NCBI GenBank assembly: GCA_904063045.1
Contig: CAJFCJ010000092.1
Location: forward strand, 7,833-71,832
DNA: 64,000 nucleotides
Reading direction: 5' to 3'
Source: Dimorphilus gyrociliatus
Lineage: Eukaryota > Animalia > Annelida
Shown here: piece after piece, positions 3,601 through 43,574 of the stretch
Numbering within the stretch: the stretch's first letter is position 1
Layout of the letters: the number at the start of each line of letters is the position of its first letter
Translations under genes and position numbers: made by a program
Notes under the pieces: model-generated
The model's input: only the letters and a program-made list of their open reading frames with translations
What the model was told of the DNA's origin: nothing
The model's database searches: none

Positions 3601-5901
3601 CAGCAAATTTGCATTAATCAAATTTCAAATGTTAAAGAATTATATTTGAATGGATGTTGTCTATCTTCAAGCTTTCTAGATATTTTTAATTGTAATTTAA
3701 AGAAAATACCTTTTCTTAAAGTTTTGGATATTTCTAAAAATGATTTCACGAATGATTCATCGTTAAAATTTTTTCGTAATATTAATTTATTGGAAATGAA
3801 TATTGAAATTCTTTTGTTCTATGCTCAAAAGAATGTTACAAACGAAATTCTACTTTGTCTCGTTCAAACTTTAAAAGAGAATAGAAAGTTGAAAATTCTT
3901 AATTCTTCTAGAAATAATTTTGAAAAATCGTTCTTATTTCAAGATGATTTTGTTAATTCTAAAGAATTCAATTTAGAAAGTTCACTGAGAATTTATAATC
4001 ATTATAAATGTCTACTTCTCAATGGAAAATGTAATATTTACAGTGATAAGCCCGAAACGACTCTTATCTTCAATTCTATTGGTTTAAAAATTAACGAATT
4101 ATGCTTAAATAACATTTGTATACCAGTTCAATTTTTAAAGAATATCCTCAAGGATAATCATTATATAAAAGAATTATTTATTAACAATTGCGATATTTCG
4201 CAAGAATCCAGCGAATATTTGGGTAGGTTAATAAGATATCAGAATGACCTCAAATTTATAGCTTTCATTAAAGTGGATTTATCAGCTAGTATCGGAGAAA
4301 ATCTATTTTACAATTATCCTTCAAAGTGTTGCAACTTAATTACATTACGACTCGATGATTGTATTCTTTCAAATGATATGTCTGTCTATTTGGGAAAATT
4401 CTTGGAATATCAGACCGATCTGAATGAATTGTGCTTAACTTCGGCCTCTTTACTATCAGACATTGGCAAAAACATCTTTCTGAGTAATACCTTAAACTTG
4501 AATGGTATAGCACATTTGAATTTAAGTTATTGTAAATTATCTCCTATAGGAGCAGAATGCGTTGGAAATTTTATAGGAAGCTCACCAAACCTAAAAATTT
4601 TAGACCTATCTTCCGTCAATATGTTGGATGATATTGGTAAAATAATTTTTAAAACTTTTTCTCAAGGATGTAATCTACTGGAAATTAATTTAAGTAATTG
4701 CCAATTTTCCTACGACTCATCTATATATGTAGGCCTATTTATTGCGCAACAACTGCGATTGAAGACATTAAATTTGCAATCAGTAAATTTTAGGGAAGGA
4801 ATTGGAAGAAATTTACTTGGAGGAGTTCCATTAGGGTTGTGTGGAATTGAAGTAATAAATTTAAAAAATTCAGTCATTTGCGAAGAAACCGCCTATTATC
4901 TAGGATTGTTACTTTCACATCAAACACAATTGAAATCTCTTAATTTAGAATATAATAATCTTTCAGGAAAGATTGGAATGAATGTCTTTTTATACGAAGG
5001 ACAGCCAAAGAGAGATGTTAATTTTGAAATAAACTTAAAGCAAAGCATCTTTTCTGCAGAGAGCGTACATTGTTTAGGAAAATTTATTGGATTATATAGT
5101 CATATATCGTCCCTGAATTTAAGCCTATTGGATTTATCATGTGGAATAGGTAACCATTTATTTAAAAATATGAATTTCGAACAATCTATAATGGATAATC
5201 TGGATTTGTCTTATTGTAAATTGTCTTTTGATTTCGTTGAAAGTTTTGTTACGTTTTTTGATAGTCTTTCAAAGATTAATGAACTCGACTGGAGTAATGT
5301 AGACTTATCAGATACAACAGGAGTTTCCCTATTTTCCAATCTTACTTCCCGTTCCGTGCGAGTTGTCTACATGAATTGTGATAATTGCGTTATTTGTAGT
5401 AAAATGTCCAAATATTTCGGTGCTTTTATTGAACAATGTAATTTATCTGCCCTATCATTAAGATCGGTAGACTTGTCTGGAGAAAGAGGAAAAACTCTGT
5501 TCGAGGGTATAAGTTCAAAATGTTGCAATATAACTGATCTATTCCTAAGCGAATGTAAGTTTTCCACAGATATGTCGTTCTTTTTAGGACAATTTATAGG
5601 ATATCAAACGAAATTAAGAACATTGGAAATGACTGGAACGGATTTATCTGATGATATAGGAAAGAACATATTTGAAAATATTTCACAAAGATGCTTCAAG
5701 ATAATTTCTCTCAATATAAGCAATTGTAAATTTTCTTCCAATATGACTGACTATCTGACTAAGGCTTTAGATATGAATAGTGAATTATGGGTAGTCAATT
5801 TATCATCAACAGATTTAACATTCAATGGTGGAAAACATGTCATTGAGAAATTATCTTCATCTTTTATAAAAAATGTAGATTTAACTAATTGTACCTTTTA
5901 A
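699..5901 (+). CDS. NACHT-LRR (NLR-like) protein 1, ~1711 aa, exons 699-2676 and 2744-5901
   Basis: Walker A GETGKGKT, Walker B-like ILLVEDLDEL, and winged-helix motif YEFLHFSFHEYFTAKYL. A phase-1 intron (GTAAGT at 2677, AG at 2742-2743) joins ORF 675..2741 in frame to ORF 2827..5901, which has ~57-aa RI-like LRR periodicity. An upstream intron (497-685) probably lies in the 5' UTR, and Met 699 is the first ATG after it. Confidence 0.88.
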
Positions 5902-8650: not shown

Positions 8651-9609
8651 CTATCCTATCTGAATAGGTCTTCTTTCAGTATTTTCTCTTATCCATTCAA
8701 GTTTACTTGCAACTCTGGCGTAAACTCCTGGGTTTCCTGGTTCGGCACAACCTCTTCCCCATGATGCTAATCCAACTACTTCAAATCGACCGTTGTTGTT
8801 GTAAGCTAGAGGACCACCGGAATCTCCTTGACATATATCTCTTCCGGGCGTTGAGGCGCATACCATGCTTTCATCAATGCTTCCTGGATATGATGCGTTA
8901 CATCTGCTGTTTGACCAAATTTCAACGTTAGTATATCTTAATACATGGGGAATGGGACCACCAGAAACAGTGGCTCCCCATCCAGAAGAAGTAGCTATAA
9001 CATTAACGTAATCAGTGAGTCTGGGAGAACAAGCTGCAGCAACATTATCATTTAATTCTAAAGAATTAGCCAATTGAAGGAGTGATATATCATTTGAGTG
9101 TCTTAATGGGTTTGTGTAGCGCTCGTGGTTGATTACTGTTAAGATATTCGACCTCTGTTCATTATTAAGTGGATTGCTTCTATTGTGAGCCCCAGCAACA
9201 ATAATTAAACCATTAAAAGATCCAATGGGAGTACAATGAGCAGCAGAAAGAGCCCAATTACTGTTGATAACAACTGCACCACAAACATGGCTTTCAAACA
9301 CTCTTAAACTCAACTAAATTATTTTAAAAAATGACATTTCTCATGGAGAAATCTTTCTATAGAATAATTATTTTGTGTCTACTTGATAAGGGAATTCATT
9401 TGCTCTCGCTTCCCAACCTCCAACTATTCTGTCAAATTTATCGCTTCTTTGCTCAGGAGCCGGATTCGGGTATTTGCTTCTCCCGCATTCTGCTAAGATA
9501 AAAATGAAAAATATACGAAAAATGAATGAAAAAAAATGATAAAATGATTATTACAGAGCCATTGGGCAGTTGTATATGAAAGAAACAATAAAATTAGTAG
9601 AGCCTTCAT
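8651..9609 (-). CDS. Secreted trypsin-like serine protease (S1A), exons 9609-9555, 9492-9383, 9313-8651
   Basis: The spliced model gives signal peptide MKALLILLFLSYTTA and activation site R-IVGG. Catalytic motifs AAHC, DISLL and GDSGGP are present, with Asp at the S1 pocket (RDICQGDSGG). All introns are GT-AG and in frame. Confidence 0.95.
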
Positions 9610-10045
9610 GTTAAAAATGTTGTTTTGATTCGAAAATAAAAAACTGATTGTTTAATGTCTAACTAAATATTCTTTTAGAGTAGTAACGCAATCTAATCAA
9701 TTATTATCTCGTAAAACTCCTGTTCATTCCCATTTCTATTTTTAGCATTCAAAATGATTGAATTTACGCACGTGTTACTATTTCTCTTTTGCCTATTCTT
9801 TTTAAATAGATGATGATAAAGACAGTTTTCTAATGCTTCTTATATTTCTTATTTAAAGTTAAATAAGTAACTCATTCTAGTTTTAATAGAGTTCTAATAA
9901 AATTATAATCTATTGAACTCTTAACAAAGTAATTGACATTTAACGTTTTTAAATGTTACATTGTTATTTAATATGGAATTTTCTACGTCGAAGGTTAGGT
10001 ATTCAAAGTTTGTCATTCATGTTGGGTGTAACTGAGAAGGAGAAC

Positions 10046-13000
10046 ATGAATTTTTGTTTATTATCTCTTCTATTATCTTCATTTATTGAATTTACAATCA
10101 ATAAAAAAGAATTGAATAAATCAACATTTTCATTTTTCTATAACAATCCCGAAAAGAACTTTAACGAAGGACAAATTGTTGTTTCAACTAAGGGTCTCTT
10201 CCTAAAAAGACCAGAATTTATCTATTACTACGACACTTATGATATATATCTGGGCTATAATCAAAGTAAAGAAAATATGTATGGTTTACATTTGGATTTT
10301 GACGATTGTGATCATTCAACCGAATTCAAACATTTTCTAGTTAAAGAATTAAATTGCGACATTGCTTTTACAAAGTTCTATCCATGCCAAAAAGGAGGTA
10401 AGGTTGAAAATATTGGAGATTTTATTCAATATTCATTCGTCGTTTCTCCATAGTTAGTCAGGTTCCATATCTATCTGTAAGAACTTTTAAACCATGCTGT
10501 GAATAGTAAGTGTTAGAATAGTGAAAGAATACCTACAGTATATTATACTCAATTTTAGTAGATTGGGTGGTTTGTATATGAATCCTCTTTGTATGAAATG
10601 CTTTAAAAGGAATAAATCTTGTAAGATGTTTCTTCATCTCTATAATCAATTTGAATCTATTTATGAATTTTTTAGTTATGTTTGGCTTTCATTCAATTGT
10701 TACTGATACATATTTTCCAATACTTAGAAGAAATGGGTCGAGTTTTAGAGTTTATTTTAATGATAATGATTTCCAAGAAATTTGCCAAAATGTTGAATTT
10801 ATAATTGGTGATAAATTTATTACCCAACAAGAATTATCCTATAAGAGATGCAATTTTATAAACAAAACCTTCATTTTTAATTCTAAATCTACTCTGCAAA
10901 AATCTGTTTGTCAAAGATTTCATTTTAACGGTTTAATTATACCTTTTATACCATATTTTTAAACAATTTATTCAATTTTATACAAGAAAAATAATTTCAT
11001 TATTACAGATATTACATTGAAAAAGACAAAAACAAGTCTTAGGCTTAGTTCAAAGTTGTATGGCAGATTATTACCTAAATTTAAAAGTGTAGTAGATATT
11101 ATGGATATTATGGAGAATATTTGTAAAATGCAATCTAAAACTTTTTCACCAATATCAATCAAAGAGAACCGTTTTAAAAGTGAAGATGGATGCTTAAGCT
11201 ATTTTCACAAAATATTCTCTTTTTCAAGTTTAGTTTTTGGAAAGTGTAATTGGAATATTTCTACTTCTAGTTTTCCTTGTTTACCTACAATAAGCAGATC
11301 TGTTCATTCTTTTGATTTTAAATGCGCAGAGAGGATGTTAGCCAAAGGTAAATATTTAAATAATAAACATTTCTCTTATGCAGTCTTTTTTTGGCTATTT
11401 TCCATAGATTTTACCTTTAGACTATGGAGGAATGATACTCATCAACTTTATAATAAAACAACTGAAGGCAAAGAATTTTCCGGAATCGTTCAAGTTTCAC
11501 TCAACAACATCTTTTATAATGTTAATCCAAAATTTATTAGAGTCAAAGAAGTAAATCTTTTATGCAAATATTTCGGATTCAGTCAAGGAACTCAAATTTT
11601 TGACGAAAAACAAAGATTAATAACAACCGTAAAATCTTTTAATCTTCGTTGTTCAATGAATGCTACTCAACTTGAAATGTGCTTGAAAGACGATTATAAA
11701 AATGATTTGACTAAATCGCAATATTTCTTCGAGTCTTCCGAAAATGTTGGAGGAGACGGTTCTTTACTCAACAGATACAATACGCTAAGCAAGACAACCT
11801 TTGCATTAGGTTATTTTATCATAAATCTATTAATAATTTAAGATTGATTAACTTCTCTTCAAATGCCATTTTAGCCCAAAATGCAACTTCAATTAGATGC
11901 TATTCCTCCAACAGCAAAAGTAGGTTAACATTCAGGGGTCTATTATTAATCGAAAGCCATCTTTTGATAGGTTGCTCTTTTATAAATGGACAAATCGACG
12001 CTATAAATTTTTACGATACTTGCTATTATATGTTTTCTTATGAGAAAGAATTGAATATTTACGAAGTTGAAAGGTTTTGCAACGGGAACAGTTTATCTAT
12101 CGTTGACTTATCATTCATCAGTACACATTATATCATAGGAAATTGGCTAACCCGTATTGGATATAATACACAAATTCCTAGTCGTCAGTATACATTACAT
12201 TAGGTATCATGAAGAGTTAACTACTTTAACTAATTTCTCAGGAAGAGGTATTTTAAAACTACTCAACAACAAAGAGATTTATATTTCATCGCCCAACTTC
12301 TCGTATCCTATTGAATATATGCAAAACAGCGTTTACATCAATACATATTCCTCAGTAAAATCTCTCTGTGAAGATATAATAAACAAATTGCGAAATTATG
12401 ACAAACAAAGAAGGACTGAATGCTTTCATTTAATTTCAAACGACTTTTTAAGATTATCCAGAATAGAGAATACAAAATGCTCAAATAAATATAACACATT
12501 TATTTGTCAGTCAATGTTAGGTATGAAATTTTCTGTTGAATATCGTCCACGGCGTGAGATTTTAGGGATTGTATCTTGAATGAGGGGTTATGAGTATCTT
12601 ACGATAAATGGCATACATTAAGGGCTAGGTTAAAAATGGAATAGTTCTGCCATCCAATGTCCATGGGATTTTTATATCTTCATAAATTTTTTGCTTACAG
12701 TAGTGTAATAATATTTATAAATATGGCAGATATTAACAATAAAAGAACAAAGATAAATGCATGGATTCCTTCTGATTTGAAACAATTCTTTTACTGCTCA
12801 AAGGAAATGTATTATATTAATATAATCTATGTTTGTGATGGAGTTAACGATTGCTTAGATTCGGGTGAAGATGAAAGATATTGCATTAGACAATTTTTTC
12901 AGTGTTCTAATGGCCAATTGATTGCCTATCAGTTTGTATGCAATCACATAAAGGATTGCCTTGATGGTTCCGACGAATATTGCGGTAGCTATATTTATTG

Positions 13001-15759
13001 TTTGTAGTTTAAACTTCTCTTTTGAAAAATCTTTACCTAATCAATAGTTAGGGAAAACTGCACTGGAGGATTCAGGTAAATTGTAATATTGTAATAAACT
13101 GGCAAAAGAAACTATCTATCTTTTAAGATGTTTAAATGGGAAATGCTTGAACCGAGATGAAATATATAATCATAAGAAAAATTGTCATGATAATTCTGAC
13201 GAAGAAAATCAAGATTTTAGTTAGTGCTAATGGGAAATCAAAGGGTGAAAACGTCCATTTTCTCACATAGCCACAAAATCATGGACGTTTTTCCTTGAAT
13301 TCACTATGACTAATAATTAATTCTGACTTCAAAAAATATTCAGAGTACTGTACAGATGTGGTATGTGATTCCGGTTGCACTCTTAAAGACAAAGTTTGTC
13401 ATTATGACACTGTTTGCAAAGATAAATACGACTTATGCAAAAAAGACAATGTGAAAAGTAAGTGATTTCCTTGTCAAGTATCTCTCACAAAAACAAACAT
13501 TTGAAAACTCCAAGTATTCTAACAACTTTAATTCATTTAATAGTATGCGAAAAGTTTGCTAAATTCCAACTCTCAACTAGGACATATGATAAGAAAAAAA
13601 TCTCTTCCTATTGCAAATATAAAATATTGCATAGAATTTATCCAAAATTCAATTTAGAATGTTTGTCAAGTAAATGCTCAATTGGAGAATATCAGTGCTC
13701 ATCGGATGGGAATTGTATATCTGTATTGAAAGTTTGCGATGGTATTTGGAATTGTAGGAGAGGCGACGACGAAGAAAATTGCCATAGTGAGTGGAAAAAT
13801 GAAAAAAACATTTGATAATTATTTTCAATTTTGTTTGTATTGTAGAGAATTATTTTTTAAAAGATCATTTTAAATGCAAAAATCTTGGACAGTTTATCTC
13901 ATTAAAAGACGTTTGTAACAACATAATAGATTGTAGTGATGGCAGCGACGAAATAAGCTGCGATAATGGGCAAACAATTAATAATTGCAAATATTATAGA
14001 TTAAATTTTACTATATTATGCAATAATTCAAAAATTGGAAATGATATTAATAGAACAAGATTTTTAAATTTTATGAAAAATTCTATATTCAAAAGTCTAT
14101 TGTTAATTAAATTTAATTTTCAAAGTTTGAACAATAGAGAAAAAAAATGTGAAAAAAAAAATCTTTTTCTTAAGTTTTCTTTTTTCAATAATAAATTTTT
14201 TCTTTTTTTAATAAATGCTTGAAAAAGATTATTTTTTTTTTTTGAAATATTCAACAAACAGTTATTTATATTTTGTCATTGAATATTAATAATTCAACTT
14301 TTGAACAGTTTAAAATTGAACAATATTTTCCAAATCTTATATTTTTGAACATTTCAAATTTGTATATTGAGAAAATGAATGATTCAACATCTATTATCAA
14401 TCTATCAATGCTTCAAAATTTTTATATCAAAAATATTACTATTAATAGTAATGATAACGTCATCAATTTTTCTGGACTTCCTCAATTACGTAATTTGTTG
14501 ATAAATCGAATAAATAATGAAGTATATTTAAACAGTGAATCATTTGAAAATCTAATAAATCTGGAATATTTATTAATAATGAATTGTCAAATCAAAAATA
14601 TTGAAAAAACTGCATTCAAACATATTTCAAATTTGAAATATTTTCACAGTCAATATTTTAGTATTTGTTGTTTTTTATCACAAATTTTAACTCAACAGAT
14701 TAAATGCTTTCCTACTATAACAAATCATCAAATTTGTAAAATTCTATTCGGTTCCTACGTTCTTAGAGGCTTCGCTTGGCTTTTAGGAATAACTGGCTTC
14801 TGTTTAAATATTCTATCGATTTGTTTAAGAATTACTACTTTTAAAAGACCAACCGCCGTTTTCTATTGCTCTCTGGCGTTTGCTGATCTTGTTGGGGCTA
14901 TTCATATTTTAATGCTGGCTTTTAAAGATAACGAATTTAATGATAATTATATAGAAAACGAGAATTTATGGAAATCTAGTAAAATGTGTCCTATAATTGG
15001 GTTATTTTCGACATTTTCACTTTTATTATCAACCGCAAGTCTGTTGTCTATAAATGTTGAAAAGTATGCTGATATCGACAGTATGGGTGATAGTAAATTC
15101 ACTTTTCAAAAAGTATTTGCTACGTCATTGTTTAGTTATATTTTTTCATTGGCAATGGCTATTTTACCCTTTTTAATCTATAAAGTAGGAAAAAAAAATA
15201 AAAAATGCCTTTTAACGACCCCTACTTTCGTTTTAAATTGTATTATTTAATTACCATTAGGCCTACTATCAACAATTTTCTATTTGCGTAACAATCTATG
15301 TAAATGGCGGAAGATTTGAAGGATGGATTTTTTCATTCTTAACGCATGGTGTTTGGTTATTTTTTATAAATGTTGTATCAACTATCCTTTATGTAAAGCT
15401 ATTTAAAAAAATATTCAAGGTATTACTAAGTGACGGAAAGCAAAGGAAGGTGGAACTTATTAAGCGCATTAAACTCAATATAGCTTTAGTATTAACATTG
15501 AATTTAGTCAGTTCATTGCCAATATTAATTTTGGGTTTTTGTTTTTGTTTCAATATCCATTAAATTAAATATTTCCTTACCCAAAAAAATAGGATTTCTT
15601 TCATTCATCTATAAAATAGATTATAGCGTTGTTCAATACAATTGGATATCAGTTATTGTTCTACCAGTTTATATTATAGTAAACCCATTATTCTATTCAG
15701 GAAAGGAAATATTAAAACTATTAAGAGAGAGGAAAGTTAGAAAGAGAATTGAGAGGTGA
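10046..15759 (+). CDS. GRL101-like GPCR 1: SRCR-like and C-type-lectin-like N-terminus, ~5-6 LDLa repeats, LRRs, 7TM; multi-exon
   Basis: Signal-like MNFCLLSLLLSSF at 10046. LDLa motifs include VCDGVNDCLDSGEDE, VCNHIKDCLDGSDE, VCDGIWNCRRGDDEENC and VCNNIIDCSDGSDE. LRRs are in ORF 14273. The 7TM region has LAFAD, WKSSKMC, EKY and NPLFY, with a stop at 15757-15759. Exact exon borders in the N-terminal half are approximate. Confidence 0.85.
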
Positions 15760-20713: not shown

Positions 20714-21631
20714 CTAAGTAATATTGGTAGTTGATATAGGAATAATTGTACTTTTAAAAGTGAATGTTTTCTTTATAAGGACTCTGACTTCAGCACAACT
20801 GATGAGTATTACAAATGAATTTAATACAGGTGGGCATATTATGATTATTTCCATAATTATAGAAATTCCATAACTGACAGATTTTAAATTTGAAGATAAT
20901 TTTCTCAAACAAATTATGTAGGCCATCCATAAAAATGCAACTAAGAATAATTGAAATAATGTAATTTTAGCTGATTTCGAAACTGATTGACATTTATTCG
21001 TTTGACTTTCCATTGATCTGGTGTGTTTTCTAGCCACTTTTAATACCAGAAAATAAAATATTAGACAAGGTATTATGGGTGCAAAAGAAAATCCATAAAA
21101 GGTAAAAATAGGTAAGGTTTCTATTGATATTAAACCAAAACATATTGAATTTTTATCAGCTGAAATAATTGGAATAGATGAAATGAAAACAGATAATAAA
21201 TTCACAAATATCAACGCTATCATCCTTATCTTTGTAGTACAGTAATTATAATATTTAAATGGATAGGATATAGAGAGATATCTACTGACGAATAGGCCCA
21301 AAAAATTCAATTGAGATTGAGTGTTCATTGAACCAGGAACGAAAATAATTAAAGCACACATTATGGGTGTCATTTGAATAACATAACCAGCATCCGTACT
21401 GATATTGATAAAGAAAAACCACAATACAAGTAAAATATTATTTACAGAAAGAGGCAGGATGAAATGTCCGAAAGATGACCTCGCAGATTGTGATTTTACA
21501 AAGAAGAAGATAACTGTAGAAGATAAGAAAAACCCGAATATAAGTTGCAAATAAATGATTATTTTTAATAAAACAAGTTCCGAATGGGTAATATCGTAGT
21601 CAATACGAAAACCCATATTTGAAGAATTCAT
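20714..21631 (-). CDS. Intronless orphan class A (rhodopsin-like) GPCR
   Basis: Seven hydrophobic segments. SRYLSISYPFKY sits at the DRY position, followed by TM5 FSFAPIIPCLIFY and KVARKH. The likely start is MNSSNM at 21631; the ORF extends to 21733. Confidence 0.85.
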   Translation of the reverse strand: MNSSNMGFRIDYDITHSELVLLKIIIYLQLIFGFFLSSTVIFFFVKSQSARSSFGHFILPLSVNNILLVLWFFFINISTDAGYVIQMTPIMCALIIFVPGSMNTQSQLNFLGLFVSRYLSISYPFKYYNYCTTKIRMIALIFVNLLSVFISSIPIISADKNSICFGLISIETLPIFTFYGFSFAPIIPCLIFYFLVLKVARKHTRSMESQTNKCQSVSKSAKITLFQLFLVAFLWMAYIICLRKLSSNLKSVSYGISIIMEIIIICPPVLNSFVILISCAEVRVLIKKTFTFKSTIIPISTTNIT

Positions 21632-22357
21632 TATATATTTTCTTGATTTTTCTTTTCCGTTTCTAAATTTCTGTTGCAGTTTCTGTGGGTTTCTCTCTCT
21701 GCAATATGAATAAGAGTAGTAAAGCAAGTTCATCTGGTAACTATAACTAATATTTTATGTAAATTATTTATCGTCACTTTTATCATTAAGCATCCAAGAA
21801 GTAATACAATAATGTGATTGAAGAGAGTGCTTGAAACTAAAAGTTCATTGTTCCATTGTAAACAATACCCTATATAAATATATAAAATATATTGCAATAG
21901 GCCTATAAGACTAGCTAGCAAATTGGGAACACTTTCTAGAATATTACTCTAAATGCAATGCACAACCTAATCCAGCATGCAATTGTACCTTTGAATTATT
22001 CTGCATGTAACAGTGATGTAAACAGCAGCAATCTGTGCTTTTGAAGGTACTATTGTTAATTGTATAATGCTGTCATTTGCTATGAGTATAACATTTGTTT
22101 CTGTATAAGCAAGTAAAATAAAACAAAAGACCCTGCTATATAAATAGATCACTTGATATAAAGTTATAAGTCTTTGAAAGAGTAATTACGATGTTTATTT
22201 ACAATACTGGCAAGTTAAAAACAAGTAAAATGGTGAGAGACAATCATCATTTTATCTGACAAGGAGGACACGGTTTTCAACAGTGTATAATGATCAAATT
22301 TTGGCAAAATAGTCTTGCTAATTATGTATCTTAAAATTCAAATTACGTATAAACTTT

Positions 22358-24912: not shown

Positions 24913-27900
24913 ATGGATTTTGAAAAATTAAAAAAACTTTCAAGTTTAATAGAAAACTCTTGGACTAATATAATCAATGATAGAAAAAAATATGTTTTGG
25001 AGCAGTTTGAAACTAATCAAATATTTCGGGAATGTAAAACTTCAAGAAATATTAATAATATATTCACACCTGTTCAATTAACGCCTTGTCAAACTTTTAT
25101 AGATAATATAGATTTTAGCAATATTAAAAACTTTCAAGAGATATTCATTGATGGAGGAGAAAGAATTTTAATCTGTGGAGATGCTGGAATAGGTAAAACT
25201 TATCATTCAATGAAAATGCTGTATACATGGGCTTGTGAGGAAAACTTTCTCAATGATTATCTTCTCTTGTATGTCAAACTAGGAGATATAGAGAACAATG
25301 TACAATTTGAAAATGTTCTATTTGCAAATAATTTTAAAACAGGTTCATTATTGAGTGGTGATCTTTTAAAATATTTTCTCACCTATGAACATATGAGTAC
25401 CAGAGTTAAAATTCTATTATTGTTTGATGGAGGCGATGAACTAAAACTTGAACATTCAACATTCAATTTAATGTTACAAAATAAAATACATTTAAACTGT
25501 CCAATAATTGTTTGGTCAAGAAATATAGCGAAAATAACAGAATTTTCATTTACTTATAATTATGTATTAAATATTCAAGGATTCCATCAGCGTCACTTGA
25601 AAAATTATTTCCATAACTTTTTCAAGCAGTCTCCGGCGTCACTCTCTCAGACTAACGGAAATTTTCAATGTTTAATGAATGGCAATGTTGAAAATGTTGA
25701 AAATATTGAAAAATCAGAAAGTTTATTTAAATTTTTAACTACAAAAAAGAAAGAACTATTCAAGTTGTGTAATAATCCATCAATGGCTTGTATAATTGCT
25801 GGTCTATGGCAAGAAAATCAATTGGAAATGACACTAGATGAATATACTATATATGAGAATATAATGCAAATTTTCCTCTCTAAAAGGGGTATACATTATG
25901 AAAGTGAAACTTACAAAGAAATTTTAGATTATTCATCTAAAATTGCTTTTGAAAATTTACTTTATAATAAAAAAATTATAGAGAATCATATTATAGAAAG
26001 ATCAGATTGTATAGGTGGAATTCTGAAACCTTTTAATTCAAGATCAACATGCACAAATCATCTTTATGAATTCACATTTATACATTTCTTATTTAAAGAT
26101 TTTCTAGCAGCAAGATATATTATTGGTCAATATGAATTTTTCAAAAATCATTGCCAAAAGATTCACTCAATAGAGGAGGCTTTTGCTGATTTTAAAAATC
26201 TATTCCTATTAAAATATGCTTTGGATTTGATTCAGGAAACTAATTTGGAGATATTTAATGCTATTGCTAAAGATAGGAAAGAAATTTTTGCAGTATTGGA
26301 AACTGATGAACAAATTATTCAAGTTATTAAAAGTAGAGATTCGCAATTGGTTCAACTTGAAAAGATAACATTAGAATTGACCTTATTTCAAGTTATCCTT
26401 GATCATTATCAATACAACATTACAGATATACATTTTAAATACGTCAATTTAAATCTACCTTCTTTCATGTATCTTTGTAGAAGGTATTTAAAAAACAAGT
26501 TGGAATGTTTAAATCTATTTGGTGGTGTTGAAGATTCAACTCCTATTCAACATCTTTACGATTTAATATCCGATATGAAACATTTACAAGTTTTAAGCAT
26601 TGCCAACATCTATTTTGAAGGCTCTGTATATTCACCATTCTATATAGAAACTTATACTCTACAAGAATTAACCTTAATTAATTGTAATTTGAAAAACTGT
26701 TCATCAAATTTCTTCAATATGAGACTTCAATGCCTGAATAGTTTAAATTTGTCGCATAATCAATTTACAGGTATAATTATAATTAATTTTGTATTATACT
26801 CAATAATATTCTCTATTCATTTGCTGAACAGATGAAAGTCTCAACAGTCTATTTGAAATGTTAGAAAATAGTAGATATTTATTATTTTTAAAGTTGTCAC
26901 AATGTCCTTCCGTTTCGAATAGAATAGATAAAGTTTTAAAATTTTTACAAACTTCTATGAGAATTTCTTCATTGAGCTATTCAGAGAATAGAATTCCTGG
27001 CCAATATGGTTATAAATTATTCAATATCTTGACTGAAAAATTTACCAATATGACTTGTATACAAATCAATAATTGTGCATCGGAATTTGATTCAAATACT
27101 TTTAATCATTTTTTGGAAAGAAATAAAAAACTAAAAGTTTTGGAATTAAAAGGAAATTATCTAAAAGAAAATAACAATCATTCATTTTTAAAAAATCTAA
27201 TGTTATCCAATTCATTGGCTTATCTATCACTTCCAAAAATTGATAATCGGGAGCAGAACAGCCAAAGTAATACTTCAATATTTGGTGATGTTGTATCTTT
27301 ATTAGATTTGCAAGCATTAGATATTGGTGGAAATTCACTTCAAGATGCTTTTATACAAGAATTTTTGATAAAAGTCTTAAAAACTTCAGAGAATTTACAA
27401 TATTTATATTTATATAATTTAGAAACTTTTAAAAAGAAAATAACTTATACATCTCATTATATAAGCAATTTTGATGAAAATTTTCAAGTACAAAATCACA
27501 AGAATAAACAGGAAACTAATATAAACAATCATTTTTTAAATAGAATAGTACAGTCTCTCGAAAGGAAATCTAAATTAACAGAGTTGAATTTGCAGAATAA
27601 TCCTCTTGGAATTGATCCTGGAAAGAGGTTATTTGAATTTATTATTTACAATTGTCAAGAATTGACTATATTATCTTTAAGTGACTGTCAAATTGATCTT
27701 AACATTGGACATCTTGTTGGTGAAGCTATTGGAAAGCAAACTAGACTGGTTCAGTTAAATTTACAGAATAACCCTCTAGGAACGGCAGTTGGGAGTAGTT
27801 TATTTAAATGTATTAAGGAAAATTGTGCACTACTGGAAGAGATATACTTAAGTAATTGCGAATTTGACTCAAATATAGGAAATGTCCTTGGGGAAGCAAT

Positions 27901-29947
27901 TGGAAGACAATTTGGACTCGCAGTACTAGATTTGAGTAAAAATCCGCTAGGAACGGAAGTCGGAAACAGTCTCTTTGCAAATATTAAGGAAAACTGTACG
28001 GAATTAATAGAAATTTACTTGAGCGATTGTCAATTTGATTCCAAGATTGGTAATATTATTGGTGAGGCAATTGGAAGACAATCTAGGCTGATGGAATTGA
28101 ACTTACAAAATAATCCTCTTGGAACAACAGTTGGAAAGAGCATATTTGAAAATATTAGGGACAACTGTACACAATTGACTGTAATAAGTTTGAGCGATTG
28201 TCAATTTGACTCGAATATTGGAGATATTGTTGGTGAAGCAATTGCAAGACAAACTTTGTTGGCTCAATTGTATTTGCAGAATAATCCTCTTGGTTCGGCA
28301 GTTGGACACAGAATATTTAAAAAAATTAAAGAAAACTGTACAGAATTGGTTGTCATCAATTTAAAAGATTGCGAATTCGATTCAAATATTGGTAATATTG
28401 TTGGTGAAGCAATTGGAAGGCAACATGCGCTATCTCAATTGTTCTTGTATAAAAATTCTCTTGGATCAGAGGTTGGAAAGGGGATATTCGAGAATATTAA
28501 AAAAAACCTTACACAATTAACACTAATTTGCTTGAACGATTGTAAATTCAACACACACATTGGTTCAATTGTTGGTGAAGCAATTGGAAAGCAATCTACT
28601 TTAAAAGTGTTGAATTTAGGGAATAATTCTCTTGGAACAGATATTGGCAAATGTTTATTCGAAAATATTAAAGAGAATTGTAAAGATTTGGAAATAGTGG
28701 GTTTAAGAAATTGCGAATTTGATTCAAATATTGGTGTTATTGTTGGCGAAGCAATTGGAAAACAAACTAAATTGGTAGAATTAAATTTACAATTCAATTC
28801 TCTTGGAACAATTGTTGGAAAGAGTATTTTTGAAAATATTAGAGATAATTGCAGACAATTGACTGCAATATGCCTAAGTGATTGCGAATTTGATTCGAAT
28901 ATTGGTACAGTCGTTGGAGAAGCAATTGGAAAACAAAGTAAACTTGCTGAATTGAATTTACAAATTAATCCTATTGGAACATTTGTGGGACATGGATTAT
29001 TCAAAAGTATAAAAGAGAATTGTAGGCAATTGGTAGGAATTTACCTAAGTGATTGCGAATTTGATTCGAATATTGGTACTGTTGTTGGTGAAGCAGTTGG
29101 AAAACAATCTAAACTGAGTAAGTTGAATTTAGAGAGTAATCCTCTTGGACCAATTGTTGGAAAGAGTCTATTCCAGAACATAAGAGACAATTGCACAGAA
29201 TTGACTGTAATATGTCTAAGCGATTGTCAATTTAATTCAGAGACAGGCGTTATAATTGGTGAAGCGATTGGCAAACAGCCAAATTTAAATATGCTATATT
29301 TACAAAATAATCTTCTTGGAACAATAGTTGGAAATAGTATTTTTACAAATATAAAAGATAATTGTCAACAATTGAAACTCTTGTATTTAAGCAATTGCGA
29401 ATTTGATTCGAATATTGGCGTTGTTGTAGGTGAAGCTATTGGAAAGCAATCTAAACTTCACAAATTGAATTTACAGAATAATCCTTTTGGAACAATTGTT
29501 GGAAAGAGTATATTTGAAAACATTAAAGAGAACTGTACAGAATTAAGAATAATATGTCTAAGTAATTGTAAATTCGATTCAAATATTGGTACTATTATTG
29601 GTGAAGCAATTGGAAAACAACCTAAACTCAATGAATTGGTATTATATGAAAATTCCCTTGGCTCAGCAGTTGGAAAAAGTATCTTTGAAAATATTGATAA
29701 TAAATGTAGAGAAATGACTTTAATATGTTTAAGTGATTGCAATTTCGATTCAAATATTGGTATTATTGTCAGTGAAGCAATTGGAAAACAATCCAAGCTC
29801 AATAAATTGTATTTACACAATAATCACTTTGGACCAGCATTTATAGATATGCTATTTCGACATATTAATGAAAGATGCTCCAGATTGAATGTGCTATATT
29901 TAAGTAAAAGTGAAATTGAGTCGGATACTGAATTTGATTTTATATGA
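24913..29947 (+). CDS. NACHT-LRR (NLR-like) protein 2, ~1657 aa, exons 24913-26770 and 26832-29947
   Basis: Walker A GDAGIGKT, Walker B LLLFDGGDEL, CNNP, and WH motif FIHFLFKDFLAARYI. A phase-1 intron at 26771-26831 joins the two ORFs in frame. A 5' UTR intron lies at 24814-24884. Confidence 0.92.
27575..29900 (+). repeat. Coding tandem array of 13 complete plus 1 partial 171-bp (57-aa) RI-type LRR pairs
   Basis: Consensus LxxLNLQNNPLGTxVGKSIFENIKENCxxLxxIxLSDCxFDSNIGxIVGEAIGKQxK. The GEAIG codons recur at 171-bp spacing (27722, 27893...), and unit 14 starts at 29798. Confidence 0.95.
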
Positions 29948-35952: not shown

Positions 35953-36703
35953 ATGTTGGTTACGTATAATTTCAGTTTTTTTCTTTTGTGTTTCCTATTT
36001 ATGCTATTTACTCAGAGAATTTCCAAAATGTTCTCAGTTGAAGCTGTTTCCGTGAAAAAATATAATAATATCTGCTTAAAAGTACAATGTGAAATAGGTT
36101 ATGAACCTTTACCTTGCTCTGAAGATACTACTATCCATGGTTGTAGAAAATGTCCGTCAGAAACATTCAACGACCAAAGAGGGAGAAGATTTCTCATAAA
36201 GAAGGGAAAAGATTTATTTTGGGAAACAAAGAGCTGCCGTAAAAGGTTTGATAATTAAAATTCGAATATAAACTGGTACACATATTTATTAAATTTACAA
36301 GACGAAAGTGTTTAGGACAATTTGAAATGGTGTTTAAAAAAGGAAGTTTTAAAAGAAATACAGAGTGTAACTGTTCAAAAGAAGGATATGACTATAGTAC
36401 ATTAGAAGAAAAATGTGTAAAAGTAAAAGTTGCTGAGCAAGGTAAGTAGAAAGATGTAATGAATTATGTTTTTTCTCTTTAATTTCAATTGTATTGAATT
36501 TTTTAGAGGACAGTATGTATATTAACTTAATCTCTATACTAGTTACCTTCATCATTTTGGTACTGGTCGCAGTACTTTTTACAAAAAAAAGAAGTAATAG
36601 TTTGTGCAGCATTCATTCATTCATTAAAGTAAATTTATTAGGTCTAAAGATGATTTTTATTAGACAGAGATCTTTCATCTTCTCAACGTTTCCTTCTAAG
36701 TAA
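35953..36703 (+). CDS. TNF-receptor-like type I membrane protein with short cytoplasmic tail; exons 35953-36245, 36302-36441, 36507 to ~36703
   Basis: Signal peptide; CRD-like CEIGYEPLPCSEDTTIHGCRKCPSETFND and KCLGQF...GSFKRNTECNCSKEGY; TM LISILVTFIILVLVAVLFT. Intron positions and phases (2, 1) match the gene at 39307-42063. The exact tail exons are uncertain. Confidence 0.8.
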
Positions 36704-36900: not shown

Positions 36901-38481
36901 TCAGAGGAAAATATTGATTGTANACATTTCAAGAACGTCATCGTCAATCCGCTGAAAGACATGATCATTTGAGACAGTTTCGATATTATGATTATTCCAA
37001 TGTAAATGAATTTGTTCATCATCAAAAGTACTTCCTTCAAATTCTATATATAAATTAGACTCCAGTTGAACTCTCCATTCAAAACGCGATGATTGAACTG
37101 AATTACTGCAATTAGCCATTTCAAGCAATATTCTAAATTTTGTACTATTGTAAGAGTGAACTTTGACACCATCCGTGAAATACAATGAAATTTCCTTCTC
37201 ATTTTCAACCTCATCAACGTTGAAACTTTTAAAGAAGGATGTAGGCCTAAAACACCTGCCAAACTGATTATTCTGTTAAAAAGATAAAAAAGATAATAAT
37301 TTTGATTATTATTATTGAAAGAAAAATATGTAAATATTTACCGGATGTTGCGGAATTATTCTTAAAATTGCGCAATCGTTATCGACTATATCGCCATAAA
37401 CATAAAATTTTAGTAGATCTTCGCTTTCTTGATTAACTATAATATATTCACAGAAACTGTTGAATGAAATTTCTATATAACTCTTATGCCATTTAGCAAT
37501 CTCTACTTTATCATATTTTTCCTTTTCCTTATGATAAACGCAAATATTCTTTCTACTCGAAGACAGAAATGGAATTCTAAGTGAACACATTTGTTTAAAC
37601 CTCTGTCCATCGGGTCTACAAACTATAGATTTAACAAACAGTTTCTTAGTCCTACATCGTCTTTTCAACTTTAAAATTTCGTCGACTGTCCAGATTTTAT
37701 CTGTTAATGAAATCTCTACAGGAGATTCTGTTGCATTTTCAGGAAAACTCATTTCAGCGAAAGGACACTTTAACACCATTGACTTCATCTCATACAAACA
37801 ACGACAGGTAGAACTTTGAAAAAAGTCTTTGTTCAAGTCCATGATAATAATTTCTAAAGATTGCAACGAGGATTTTGGTTGCGCCATAGACATTTTTAAA
37901 GATCCTAGCGATTTGGATGAAATACCGGAAGTAGAAAATTCATACTCAAAATTCAATCCTAAAAAGCTATGCAAACCAGTTCTACTAAGAATGATACTAT
38001 CTACTTTTTCTTTTCCAGTAGATGTTTGCAGGTGGAGAAAAAAGCGTAAATTTTCCTCTTCTTTAGGCAATTCAAATTGACGAATGACTATAACATTTGA
38101 AGTAGGCTTTTTGTTTCTTCCTGTACAAATTGTGAAAGTTAAATGGCCATTGATACTCTTATCCGTTACGATGGCCTTTTTCCTTGTAACGAAAAGGAAA
38201 ACTGCAGATGAATGTTGACATATTTCTCCTGTCTCGTTTTGATATTTTATTGGTTCATCATTTCTGTTAATTCTCTTTACGGCTGATTTTTCTAATTTTC
38301 TTTTTCTAACGTTATTAACCTTAGGACGGGATTTGCAGTTAGGACTAATGACTTTGTAAATATTTGTAGTAATTGATTGATTGTTGTCCATGAAATGTGC
38401 CATTTTCGTATTTTCTCTTTTAATCAATATGCCGAACGGTAATAATAGAAATATTACTAGATAAAAGATGATAGAAAACAT
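36901..38481 (-). CDS. Ectodomain-less paralog: N-terminal TM/signal-anchor + ZU5 + UPA-like, death domain absent or disrupted; exons 38481-37342, 37272-36901
   Basis: Collinear similarity to ORFs 40075..41334 and 39307..39987 (LKCPFAEMSFPENATESPVEISL vs LKCPFAQLSIPDDATNSPVEISL; NNQFGRCFRPTSF vs KNQFHTCFVPQSF), with the same phase-0 intron. An in-frame TAA lies 6 nt before the ATG. There is an ambiguous base N at 36923. Confidence 0.75.

Positions 38482-38498: not shown

Positions 38499-38526
<28 letters not shown>
38499..38526. repeat. (AG)n microsatellite, which forms the polypyrimidine tract of an acceptor on the minus strand
   Basis: Perfect AG dinucleotide run, followed on the minus strand by cttatccttag. 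Confidence 0.9.
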
Positions 38527-38529
<3 letters not shown>

Positions 38530-39306
38530 TTTTAGTTTGTACTCACGTATTAAAAAGGCAGCTTTAAAAAGTTAATACAGCGTGTGCTTTAAAATCGAAA
38601 AATTGTGTTATAGGTTGAATTGCCTTCTTCAACAAGAAATTCAAATGATCCTGGACACTTTTGTCAAAATCTATTTAAATAATAAAAACTTTACTAAGAC
38701 CAAGTAAAATTTTGGCTGTTGACATGTTTTTTTTGGTTCATTAGGCCTAAGTGTTTATCTTGTAAAATTTGCAATTCTTTTTAAGTAGTCATTATTTGGC
38801 AGAGAGTCAGTTTGTTCTTGGTGTTTCCACAGAACAAATTCAAAATGGCTGACCTGAACAAAAATAGCGTCTGTATGTCATATAATAAAACAAAAATTAA
38901 TTTGTTCATTTCTTGATTTTCTCATGTCAAATAGTTACAACTATGTCCATAATTTCCCACATAATGGGTACGATTTCACCCGCATTAATTTTTGGCCTAG
39001 TTCTTGACCTATATTTGTGGATTGTGTTGAAAAAAATTATTCCTACACTTACTAGTTTTTGCGGAAGGTGACTGCCAACCTTTTGATGAGATATTTCGGA
39101 AATCAATAACACTTGAGAGTGGAAAAATGCCTTAAAATTTGTCGACTATTCTCTCAAAAGACGCAAGGTTTTTAGGTGGTTATAAACCTCATTATAATAT
39201 GTTTTAGTGATTATAGAAATGTTTCGAACCGGAAGTTTTATTTAATAAAATGACTCACTAGATGGGGATCAATTCATTTATTTATACTAAAATTTATGTC
39301 TGTCTA

Positions 39307-42063
39307 TTAATCAATAATCAATGAAATAGACTCTGGTGGTTTTACCTGGTAATCATTATCATATAAGGTGAATAATTTCAAGAGTTTCTCTACTTGCGGA
39401 TACATGTTAAACTTTGTAACAAGTTCCCTTTCGCTGTATTCTAAACTGTATATTAAATTTTTTCTCGTAATTTTCTTCCAAAGATAATTTCTAATTTCTT
39501 TTAAACAACTAAATCTCGATAGGCGTAAAGATGGAATTCCTGGAAAACTTTTACAGCAATTAAAGAAATTTCCACCTCCAATAACGCAAACAAACAATTT
39601 AAAAGTCATTTCTGAATATTTATCATGCGCCATTTGAAAAATCATTTTTTCAGTAATATAATTAAAATGAACAGAGTGAAGAGGAGAAGTTTCGTTAAAA
39701 GTCGTATCAGATATATTTGTCCAATTCAGCAAAATTGTCTCGAAATCTTCATTATTTTCCCCTAATTGGAGTGAGAAAGTAACCCGTCTCTCAGGATTAA
39801 ATTTTTCAATGATTTCTTCTAAATTGAAAATTTCAGGACTAACCGAATGAGGATAATTCTTACTTTCTTTCTTTTCTATCTCAAAGTAAACGGTTTTAAT
39901 TTGTTCAATCTGTTGACTTGCATCTTTATCATGAGATACTAATGCAATTTTTCTTTCATTTTCCACATCAACATTAAATTTTTTCATAAACGATTGAGGT
40001 ACGAAGCAAGTATGGAATTGATTTTTCTGAAAATGTCCAATTTATCGTTTTATATTCATAGTTTTAATAAATTTTCATTTCCCTACCTGAATTTGAGGAG
40101 AAATTTTTAAAATCGCCTTATCTTCGTCAACTTTATCACCGTAGACATAGAATTTTATCATATTTCTTCCTTCGTTATTGACGATAATATATTCGTTAAA
40201 GTCAGTAATATGAATTTCTATAAAGCTAGCATCCCAGATCACATTTTCAACTTTTAGCAGACATTTATCATTTTTATGATATACAGAAACACGTTCAGGC
40301 ATTGAAGACAGAAATGGAATCTTTAGCATGCACACTTTGTTAAATCTTTGTTCATCTGCTTTACATATTAGATGTTTAATAAATATTTGATCATCATTTC
40401 CTTTTCTAATATTATCTATATCAGGAATAGCTTCGTCGTCTTTGTAGATTTTCTCATGTAATGAAATCTCTACCGGAGAATTTGTCGCGTCGTCGGGAAT
40501 ACTTAATTGAGCAAATGGACATTTTAAAGTAGTTGATATCTTATCATACCAGAAATGAAAACTAGGATTTTCGAGTAGATCTTTATTCAAATCGATATCA
40601 ATAGTTTTAAAATTATCCACTGACGATTTCAGTAGATTTATTGATAGTTTTAACGAATCTCGTGAGCCATCTGATCCGCTAACATTGTATTTGCGAATAT
40701 TGAAATTGTATTGAAACGTTTCGACTAATGATAGATCAAGGCGAGTTCTATCAATAGAGATTTCTTGTGTATCATATTCTTCATTCGATATTTGCCGATT
40801 GATTGAAAAGACTAAATTTTCAGCAGTACTGGATAATTTAAAACTACGAATGGCTATGATGTTGGATAATTGCATATTTTCTGTACAAACGTTAAATGTT
40901 AATTTTCCCTTAACAGAACCATTTTCCTCAACAGTCAATTCATTTGTAACAAACAGAAGAACTTGAAGATCAAATTTGCTCTTTTCCATTATAAAAGTTT
41001 CTTTAAAATCAAAGAAATGAATTATTGGGATAATGTCATCAGTCTTGGATTGAAGTTTTACACATATACCAATCTTTTTCTGCAGTTCAGAACTAGTTTG
41101 ACAAGTGACAGTAATTTTCTGACAATCTTGTTGAAATTCACTTTTCATGCTAACTGTTAAAAAGTCTTGGTCAAGATATGATTTAACATCGTAAAGAAAA
41201 ATTCCAGACGAATGCCGAAATATGCCGTTATTTTCTGATAAATCAATATTCAGAGTCTTTTTAACAATTTTACTCCCATTGGAAATGTTTGACAATTCTA
41301 TATCTTTCAGCAGAGATTGGCTTTCGCCGATCATCGAGGCTTTAAAAAAGGAACTATGTTTTTAAAAATTATTATAGGAAGATATTCACCTTCTCCTCCT
41401 TCTTCCATCATTGAGGTTTCAAGAGATTTGCATCTGCACAATTTTTTTTTCGCTCTTGCATAATATAAAAACAAGAAAACCATAAAAACCACAAATAATA
41501 TCATGAGAAGTAAAATGATTAAAATTTGATAAAGGTGTGTTGCTGTTGAATTAAAAAGATGAAAAAACGAGTTTGAGCTATAAGAATATGTTCAACTTAC
41601 ACGATTCATTATTGTTGTCTTCCACTTGCAGGCATTTGTTTAGATCTATCCTATATCTGTAATTGCTGTTTGTACAACTGCACAAAGTGTCTTCCTTGGA
41701 ATTTCCCTCTTTGAGGACAGTCTCAAATAATCCATTACAAAGTCGTCTATTTCATCAATTGAACAATGAAATCTATTTACGTTTTACGTGTCTTTATTTT
41801 ACAAACCTTTCACGACATTTTCGAATTAGCCAATAAGATTTGGATAATTCATCAATTAAGATTCTACTTCCTTGTATGTCGTTAAAATATCCGGGTCTAC
41901 ATTCTCTGCACGAATTGCCAATACTGTTATTGTTGCAGGGAGACGGTTCAAAACCTACATCGCAGACTATTTGTTGGCAATTTCCTATTTTTCTTGAATT
42001 GGCTGCGACTGATTGAAATTGAATTCTTACTAAATGTATCCATAGTAAAACAGCCGGAGACAT
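39307..42063 (-). CDS. TNFR-like ectodomain + TM + ZU5/UPA + death-domain-like receptor, 842 aa; exons 42063-41807, 41746-41601, 41542-41390, 41339-40087, 40026-39307
   Basis: Exon lengths 257+146+153+1253+720 = 2529 nt, stop-free with GT-AG introns. It has a signal peptide, CRDs CDVGFEPSPC...CRECRPGYFND and LCNG...GNSKEDTLCSC, and TM ILIILLLMILFVVFMVFLFLYY. The ZU5-like segment is LSIPDDATNSPVEISL...CKADEQRFNKVCMLKIPF...DFNEYIIV, and the death-domain-like end is YLWKKITRKNLIYSLEYSERELVTKF. Confidence 0.85.
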
Positions 42064-42354
42064 TTCAATATAATAATTTAGACATCAAAAATAAGAATTA
42101 ATGTCTGTCTCTTATAACCATTGAATTTATGGTTGATATTGAACAGAAGTAACAATTACTGCGATTCATATGAGTGGTTATAATTCAATTTTTAGGGAGC
42201 ATATATTATTCTCATAAATACTATTGTAATTTATTAATTTGGAATCTCCCTAAATATTTTTGTCTAGTGTTTTTTTTTTATTATTGTGAAAAGCAATACT
42301 TGATTATTCAAATTTAACTTTTAAACCTTTTCCAACATCCTTTAGTAAGTCAGT

Positions 42355-42600
42355 AGGGTTTTCTTTCAGCTCTACTTCCTCATTTATCGTTAAAGCTTCG
42401 TGGCTTACATTTTACGCAAGAGTCCCAAGAGCTATTGGTGATGGTTTATAACCAATTTTGCAACACAACTTCTGTCCAGTTGTGATCATTTTTGTTTTCC
42501 AAACAAAACTTTGTTGCTGATGGTAAATATCTTGATGGTATCTGTAGCGCCATCTGTTATTAAATAAAGTCATAATAAACAAACTACTGGTTATAAACAT
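42355..42600 (-). pseudogene. Pseudogenised TNFR-like first exon
   Basis: KLCCKIGYKPSP [frameshift] NSSWDSCVKCKPRSFNDK*GSR aligns with QIVCDVGFEPSPCNNNSIGNSCRECRPGYFNDIQGSR of the neighbouring gene. Confidence 0.75.
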
Positions 42601-43574
42601 TTACTAAGTATAATATCTCTTTAGATTGCATTTAGTAAAGTAGAGAATTTCCTATGGTTATTATAATCATATATAACAATTCAAAAAACTTATAACCATA
42701 GATTTTATTGATGTAACTCTTTTTTTTATACAACCATATTCGGACGGGAGCCATACGATAATTAGAATTTCACTTAAGAAATGATAAAGGTCATTGAATA
42801 TTAAAAGTATAGATAGAACAAACAAACAAATTTCGTCCATCAGATAAAGTTTTTATTTGCACTTGTATTAGCAGGACCTCAGTACAGTGGATGAATCTGT
42901 TATCAGAATTGGATCATTATCTGAATGAGTTATATCAATAGTTTTTCTCTCCAAAGAATCTGAACCATGCTTCCATTCCCACTTCCTTTCTATGTCATTG
43001 TTTTCAGAAGAGCTTGAGAATTCATTTAGACCATGATTATCATTAGTATTGTAACCAGTATCAGGTTTTATAATTTCTATATCTGAGTCCTTACTATCTG
43101 AGATTTCTGATGGAGTGCCATGGTTTAGGGCACGTTGTTCCATCATTACTATACTGACTTTGCTTTGTTGAGGTTGCCTTATTCTTTTAGCTAGGTTCCC
43201 TTTCCTGCTATCAAATTGCAGACAACAATGTTTTGCTTCAAAATTAAGGTTTGCTCCTACACTTTGTAGGAAATCAAAACCAAATATTATTAAGGTAAAA
43301 TGATTGGATTGAAACAGTGAAGACTTAAATATTTGTAGGTTTGTCTCCAATATCCAATCACCACTTTACAGTTGGTGAAAAGGAATTTGAAAAATCTCTT
43401 TTGGATAAGGTGTTTTGCAATTCCAAAAATTTCCGACAAAATAGAACTTTTTTGAAAGTTCCATTATTGAAATTCGCAAATATAGACACATTACTTATTT
43501 TTTTGTGTACAATCAGTTTATTATTCATGAGTAGTATTCAATATTGTAATTAACACTGAAAGGAAACATCAAAC

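Follow-up and report, generated by a model that had tools for sequence, protein, structure and literature searches.

A type I receptor of the annelid Dimorphilus gyrociliatus with a TNFR-like head and a putative ZU5 fold in its cytoplasmic tail

The window analysed here is a stretch of 64,000 nt from Dimorphilus gyrociliatus (GenBank assembly GCA_904063045.1, contig CAJFCJ010000092.1, positions 7,833 to 71,832 of the forward strand). An earlier note, made from the letters alone, had described on it a chimeric receptor with an ectodomain resembling tumour necrosis factor receptors (TNFR) and a tail of the UNC5/PIDD type comprising ZU5, UPA and a death domain. The gene in question is located on the minus strand (42063-39307), where splice reconstruction joins five exons to 842 stop-free codons. 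All introns are of the GT..AG type with lengths of 60, 58, 50 and 60 nt; the median intron of this genome measures 66 bp (PMC7854359). The junction between exons 3 and 4 was found by enumerating all GT/AG pairs, whereby the 50-nt intron 41389-41340 gives the 842 codons. A junction at 41353 was rejected: it breaks the frame, and 41389-41340 is the intron removed in RNA. The features of the gene are as follows (window positions, all on the minus strand).

42064..42541, minus strand: 5' leader, ~480 nt, unspliced (a contig of sequencing run X1 runs 41807-42541 without a joint)
41807..42063, minus strand: exon 1 with start codon, signal-peptide-like N-terminus (residues 1-21) and cysteine-rich repeat 1
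41601..41746, minus strand: exon 2 with cysteine-rich repeat 2, joints seen in RNA
41390..41542, minus strand: exon 3 with the transmembrane helix, residues 138-164 (41534-41454), and a basic juxtamembrane stretch
40087..41339, minus strand: exon 4 with beta-rich residues ~225-440, the putative ZU5 fold and, following it, the first conserved strands (KFYVYGD)
40168..40563, minus strand: ZU5-like fold, residues 445-576, suggested by Foldseek of an AlphaFold model and weak sequence signals
40087-40167 and 39652-40026, minus strand: beta region at the UPA position, residues 577-728, ~150 aa
39307..40026, minus strand: exon 5 with the rest of the UPA-position region, the C-terminal helical region and the stop
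39310..39651, minus strand: C-terminal helical region, residues 729-842, five predicted helices
39264..39309, minus strand: stop codon (39309-39307) and short 3' untranslated region with AATAAA

The spliced translation is letter for letter (100%) identical to DgyrCDS14866 / CAD5126835.1 / UniProt A0A7I8WF60 (842 aa). The gene model is already part of the public annotation, as an uncharacterised protein without recognised domains. That the gene is hidden by being split over several open reading frames (ORFs), as stated earlier, is thus true of the raw ORF track but not of the public annotation, which holds the exact model.

Transcription was evaluated by placing contigs of four public sequencing runs on positions 38900-42700. 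Each of the four predicted joints is found in contigs of runs X1 and X3, the intron ends reading CT..AC on the plus strand; those of the genomic run X2 are continuous and unspliced across the receptor gene. Run X3 is labelled 'DNA?', yet its contigs are spliced and restricted to the transcribed span, and we therefore treated it as RNA. One RNA contig extends from exon 4 through exon 3 into 128 letters of exon 2, another joins exon 5 to 303 letters of exon 4, and a third joins exon 1 to exon 2 with a short side of just 26 letters. Since these spliced contigs bridge exons 5-4, 4-3-2 and 2-1, head and tail exons reside on one mRNA. It spans about 42541 to 39264, and its 3' end lies 43 nt beyond the stop, right after AATAAA, where the RNA contigs of the gene terminate (39263/39264). 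The five-exon GT-AG model of 842 codons put forward in the earlier note was rebuilt and recovered from RNA, with all four introns removed in the contigs of X1 and X3, and separate mRNAs for TNFR-like and ZU5 exons are ruled out by the contigs linking both parts. Taken together, the gene is intact, spliced and expressed and encodes a type I membrane receptor of D. gyrociliatus.

The features of a type I topology are found in the expected order, namely a hydrophobic, signal-peptide-like N-terminus (residues 1-21), an ectodomain, a single transmembrane helix and a basic stretch thereafter. Residues 138-164 form the only 19-residue Kyte-Doolittle window above 1.6 (peak 3.6) and are followed by the basic ARAKKK. 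AlphaFold places a helix at 134-169 over the membrane span with a predicted local distance difference test (pLDDT) of 84-88, in agreement with the transmembrane helix claimed before. The ectodomain comprises ~115 aa in two cysteine-rich repeats, with 10 cysteines within residues 29-124. Repeat 1 holds Cys 29, 34, 43, 52, 55 and 83. Repeat 2 holds Cys 89, 108, 110 and 124 and contains the motif C-x-G-x-F-x2-V-x3-G-N-S-x2-D-T-x-C-x-C.

A profile of the ectodomain was built from three sequences (the receptor, a full-length paralog at locus L001 and a head-only neighbouring gene, see below) and run by hmmsearch against all PDB chain sequences. Five of its six matches belong to the TNFR superfamily, with TNFRSF9 (4-1BB) at E 0.0066 followed by ELR1, EDAR, OPG and DR6; no laminin chain is among the six. 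The G-N-S-x2-D-T-x-C-x-C part of repeat 2 aligns with repeats of EDAR, ELR1, OPG and 4-1BB. Hence we assign the head, with moderate confidence and on the basis of its sequence pattern, to two TNFR-type repeats. No match to the Pfam families of immunoglobulin (Ig) or thrombospondin type 1 (TSP1) domains was found in the ectodomain.

The cytoplasmic tail measures ~650 aa. Four weak lines converge on a ZU5 fold for residues 445-576. Firstly, the paralog P0002 and its genomic ORF match Pfam ZU5 at E 0.05 with 14 bits (cut-off 21) at the stretch homologous to 445-576. Secondly, a three-sequence profile matches the ZU5 chain of ZO-1 (2kxs, E 0.73), with 'IPxGA ... PVxLxIP' stretches in register. Thirdly, a protein language model places both exon 4 and the whole protein next to clusters of ZU5, FIIND, UNC5, UNC5CL, CARD8 and DTHD1 with scores of 0.68-0.89; UNC5 is the top neighbour, and the UNC5 and UNC5CL clusters carry ZU5+UPA+Death in 96-100% of their members. 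An ESM-model search of the Atlas likewise gave ZU5 in 5 of the 10 rows with a family set among the matches listed. Finally, an AlphaFold2 model was calculated from an alignment of nine rows, all of them paralog pieces, and is free of a bias by ZU5 sequences because it was built from paralogs alone. Searched with Foldseek against the PDB, its top match is the ankyrin ZU5 3f59 (E 1.3e-3, template modelling score by target 0.55), then 3ud2 and 4d8o. PIDD1 and zebrafish NLRP1 are among the matches in the Swiss-Prot part of the AlphaFold database (AFDB); the AFDB clusters contain mainly generic Ig-like noise besides two ZU5 clusters. On these grounds residues 445-576 are predicted to adopt a ZU5 fold. 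The match (40563-40168) agrees well with the ZU5-like segment at ~40540-40180 named in the earlier note.

The end of this stretch was compared with the cleavage site of self-processing relatives of ZU5. CARD8 is cut between Phe296 and Ser297 of an S-F-S motif, whereby His270, located 26 residues before Phe, is required and Glu279, 17 before Phe, modulates cleavage; the motif of PIDD is H-F-S (PMC3210808). In the passage of PMC10084454 that cites Liao et al. 2014, GAIN, ZU5 and Nup98 are considered one ancient autoproteolytic fold. The receptor reads T-D-F-N-E-Y at the end of its ZU5 strand set, with D565-F566-N567 at the cleavage position. The L001 paralog shows N-S-F-S-E-Y and a tail-only neighbour N-S-F-C-E-Y at the same position. 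A histidine at -26 from Phe is invariant in all three annelid copies (His540 in the receptor), a spacing identical to His270/Phe296 of CARD8, and an acidic residue 16 before Phe is present in each of them (Glu550 in the receptor). The histidine of the canonical ZU5 'IPH' is replaced by Phe in 3/3 copies. Both of the kept positions, -26 and -16, support, as far as residue patterns go, the ZU5/FIIND reading. The [HS]-F-S motif with its Ser nucleophile is absent in the receptor. Since DFN offers neither Ser nor Cys in place of HFS/SFS, the receptor probably does not self-cleave. The L001 paralog, in turn, may self-cleave because it retains SFS along with the histidine and the acidic residue at these two positions.

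The ZU5-like stretch is preceded by a beta-rich region of ~220 aa (residues ~225-440) with no fold assigned. It opens with G-x-F-x-H-S-x-G, which by eye only resembles the start of ZU5 domains; hhalign and hmmsearch revealed nothing significant for a second ZU5 or UPA copy within residues 225-440. Downstream, residues 577-728 begin with the invariant KFYVYGD strand, are conserved in both paralogs and contain strands only in the model (pLDDT 25-35). By position, length and beta content this ~150-aa region may represent a UPA-type domain. The last ~100 aa are predicted to be helical (pLDDT 30-42, helices of 21-22 residues in AlphaFold), and the indels relative to P0002 are located between the predicted helices. 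They presumably form a helical interaction domain, possibly of the death fold.

We therefore regard it as likely that the gene encodes a type I receptor with two TNFR-like repeats, one transmembrane helix and a 650-aa tail with a ZU5 fold, a putative UPA and a putative helical domain. Several results weigh against this reading and bear on its parts to a different extent. Concerning the head, Pfam TNFR_c6 does not match the ectodomain even at E 10, and the best-scoring Pfam entries, EGF_LMN_ATRN (E 2e-4 to 3e-3) and EGF_laminin, stay under their cut-offs; a weak laminin-EGF match of this kind falls on exon 1. This would fit an ectodomain that is laminin-EGF-like or another small disulfide-rich module, in which case the protein would be no sensor of TNF ligands. 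Given that the PDB matches of the profile are five of six TNFR superfamily members with zero laminin, and that the repeat 2 motif aligns to EDAR, ELR1, OPG and 4-1BB, we consider such a head unlikely. Of the two to three TNFR-type repeats counted previously, two TNFR-like ones are recovered by the profile, but TNFR_c6 leaves them unmatched.

Concerning the tail, no Pfam family reaches its cut-off when the receptor is searched as exon pieces, as whole protein or in sub-regions. The Pfam profiles of the families named in the earlier note (TNFR_c6, ZU5, UPA and Death) give no threshold match in the spliced protein, nor in the paralogs. All language-model scores stay below 0.9 and are to be taken as leads only. 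The AlphaFold2 model is poor, with a mean pLDDT of 41 and 44-60 over the ZU5 stretch, and according to the caveat given for the Foldseek tool, models of low pLDDT can yield meaningless fold matches. A single-sequence AlphaFold model of exon 4 was uninformative (pLDDT 35). Sequence searches of the tail in the PDB gave nothing relevant for exons 4 and 5 by phmmer and nothing with a whole-tail profile. Moreover, homologues outside D. gyrociliatus were not found: word-index searches returned nothing or the receptor protein alone, and an exhaustive search of 1.84 billion representatives returned the receptor itself and one paralog. As a consequence a deep alignment is impossible, and conservation is unusable as evidence.

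The ZU5 match could thus have arisen artificially from a beta-sandwich model of low confidence, the tail being a lineage-specific beta-rich sequence unrelated to ZU5, as the pLDDT of only 44-60 in the matched stretch would allow. However, independent weak sequence signals lead to ZU5 in the same register, two different predictors both reach ZU5 families, and the x-F-x motif, the histidine 26 residues before Phe and the acidic residue 16 before it are placed as in CARD8 (where Glu279 is 17 before Phe). An artefact is accordingly improbable in our view.

More critical is the part behind the ZU5-like fold. Pfam UPA, UPA_2 and UPA-FIIND do not match residues 577-728, and Pfam Death does not match the C-terminus even at E 10, so that UPA and death fold are both devoid of direct support. 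A C-terminal profile found no death-fold chain in the PDB, just ribosomal protein noise. The UPA-like region claimed in the earlier note hence comes down to position and beta content, and the death-domain signature it had read into the C-terminus is matched by neither Pfam Death nor a PDB death fold and corresponds to low-confidence helices only. The structure prediction supported the ZU5 fold but does not permit a judgement of UPA and C-terminus at such pLDDT. A complete ZU5-UPA-death-domain supramodule as in UNC5, PIDD or ankyrins, closed and autoinhibited, would turn the protein into a TNF-ligand dependence or death receptor. Order and sizes are compatible with it (ZU5 at 445-576, ~150 aa beta, ~100 aa helical), the nearest language-model clusters UNC5 and UNC5CL carry all three domains in nearly all members, and indels relative to the paralog sit between predicted helices. 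Apart from the missing profile and PDB matches, the predicted helices are long and of low pLDDT, and the tail-only paralog is wholly devoid of the C-terminal helical region. We consider the complete supramodule doubtful, and a C-terminal death domain, taken on its own, is a guess with only slightly better odds. To speak of an 'autoinhibited UNC5-like module' or a 'TNF-family dependence receptor' is speculative.

The receptor is not a single copy. P0002 corresponds to DgyrCDS14392 (437 aa) and is annotated as tail only. At L001 (8759-11381, plus strand) three exons (8759-9042, 9113-9252 and 9327-10702) lie upstream of the P0002 tail and join it in frame; a signal peptide, two cysteine-rich repeats and a transmembrane helix (VMFTLIICTVLCLLVFV) are encoded there. 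This copy has no intron between the transmembrane exon and the tail exon. The public model DgyrCDS14392 is truncated, and L001 is a second full-length receptor, one with S-F-S. The receptor architecture is therefore present at least twice in the genome. Partial copies are found next to the receptor gene:

35953..36446, perhaps to ~36700, plus strand: head-only TNFR-like gene with signal peptide and two cysteine-rich repeats
36904..38481, minus strand: tail-only paralog, 43% identity over 293 aa, ZU5-like domain with SFC and UPA-position region
~42400-42600, minus strand: frameshifted relic of exon 1 with a hydrophobic start, CCKIGYKPSP, then SWDSCVKCKPRSFND in another frame

The head-only gene is supported by tblastn matches at 36031-36246 and 36300-36428 and by the ectodomain profile (E 1e-31 and 3e-17), its repeats being 34-45% identical to those of the receptor. 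By eye it apparently runs on into a transmembrane helix and a short tail. The tail-only paralog starts with a hydrophobic N-terminal anchor (MFSIIFYLVIFLLLPFGILIKRENTK) and has no ectodomain; ~80 aa of the region ahead of ZU5 are missing, and it stops before the C-terminal helical region. It was not found in the protein databases searched. Its sequence contains an N at 36923, and a (GA/CT)n microsatellite (38500-38530) is located directly upstream of its start. The relic exon is part of the transcribed 5' leader up to about 42541, where it adds upstream ORFs, and the ORF 42600-42415 over it shows a weak match to the ectodomain profile. Its remnant of cysteine-rich repeat 1 falls at about 42400-42480.

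Such a surrounding raises the question whether the receptor arose by recent shuffling in a gene cluster of fast turnover and is now decaying in function, without any particular role in signalling. The truncated copies (head only or tail only), the frameshifted relic, the lack of orthologues found outside the species and the lost cleavage nucleophile would all be in line with decay. On the other hand the frame of 842 codons is intact, four short introns are accurately removed in a transcript seen in two runs, and long blocks are invariant among copies that are just 41-51% identical. There is hence little to be said for decay, and the reading as a receptor with a TNFR-like head and a ZU5-containing tail is retained.

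The wider neighbourhood is AT-rich (~30% G+C in the window), and its ORFs for NACHT, LRR and LRR-containing G-protein-coupled receptors (GPCRs) are metazoan genes:

24913-29947 and 675-5901, plus strand: NLR-type ORF pairs, each a NACHT ORF followed by an ORF of ~1000 aa
56391-57602 (minus strand), 14273-15250 (plus strand) and 20714-21733 (minus strand): ORFs for GPCRs of the rhodopsin type, with N-terminal LRRs in two of the three

NLR-type ORF pairs thus occur near the receptor cluster, and the ORF 26858-29944 is LRR-rich. Expanded gene families of D. gyrociliatus are few and mostly locally duplicated immune genes (PMC7854359). NACHT-LRR neighbours and locally duplicated immune families together suggest an innate-immune or cell-death context.

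How the receptor might work can be outlined, whereby every step beyond the domain anatomy is our inference. An extracellular ligand, either a TNF-like trimer or another clustered ligand, would gather receptors via their TNFR-like heads. The tail of ZU5, UPA and helical domain would then recruit cytosolic partners through its C-terminal helical region, in the way UNC5, UNC5CL and PIDD signal. In this scheme the ZU5/UPA part would provide a scaffold; it may possibly also lock the molecule internally, as it does in UNC5B. A further variant takes the cleavage motifs into account and assumes a small annelid family of surface receptors carrying TNFR-like heads on a self-cleaving ZU5-UPA module of the PIDD/FIIND type. 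Copies with SFS would be pre-cut, and a ligand or the loss of the membrane-bound N-terminal part would free a UPA-helical fragment that nucleates a signalling complex, the DFN copy being a non-cleaving regulator or decoy. Although unlikely by our estimate, such a family would parallel, in a membrane receptor, the 'functional degradation' of NLRP1 and CARD8.

ZU5-UPA modules are known behind Ig/TSP heads (UNC5), on a bare anchor (UNC5CL) and in the cytosolic proteins PIDD1, NLRP1 and CARD8, and TNFR heads are known ahead of death domains or TRAF-binding tails. A TNFR-type head with a ZU5 tail is an unusual domain shuffle. Literature searches found no described TNFR+ZU5 architecture, which is no proof of its absence. 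If true, such a receptor would mean that two ancient modules of cell death and immunity can recombine. The local cluster represents a natural series of full receptor, head-only gene, tail-only gene and relic exon, with copies that have or lack the cleavage motif, useful for studying how chimeras arise and whether self-cleavage matters to a membrane receptor. Lineage-specific shuffling of immune domains is common among invertebrates. The weight of the finding is limited because the family comes from one species so far, such shuffling is common and the death domain is putative and unproven.

Classical death receptors and their relatives (TNFR1, Fas, p75NTR, EDAR, DR6) resemble the receptor as type I proteins with TNFR-like cysteine-rich repeats. 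Their death domain, however, follows shortly after the membrane, and they have no ZU5, whereas the receptor has two repeats only, unmatched by TNFR_c6, and a tail of 650 aa that contains ZU5. In ankyrins, which are ANK-repeat adaptors of the cytoskeleton, ZU5 binds spectrin; their ZU5-ZU5-UPA-DD tandem (4d8o, 3ud2, 3f59; DD, death domain) shares 8-12% identity with the receptor. PIDD1 and the FIIND of NLRP1/CARD8 provide a ZU5 fold ending in x-F-S with a His at -26, a pattern found again in the SFS of the L001 paralog. In contrast to the receptor they are cytosolic, carry LRR, NACHT or CARD parts but lack a receptor head at the membrane, and possess the Ser nucleophile that the receptor is missing.

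UNC5A-D are type I receptors with a cytoplasmic ZU5, a subsequent beta domain and a C-terminal helical domain (architecture per PMC10084454). They differ by an ectodomain of two Ig and two thrombospondin type 1 domains in place of two TNFR-like repeats. The receptor in turn has an extra beta-rich region of ~220 aa before ZU5 and no detectable sequence homology to UNC5, and its UPA and death domain are putative only. UNC5CL (ZUD) is a membrane-anchored ZU5-UPA-DD protein without ectodomain that kept autoproteolysis (PMC10084454). The receptor deviates from it by its cysteine-rich ectodomain and by reading DFN where UNC5CL-type cleavage would occur, and the sequences do not allow homology to be demonstrated. 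The tail-only neighbour (38481-36904), by contrast, shares the layout of UNC5CL with its N-terminal anchor and its SFC motif.

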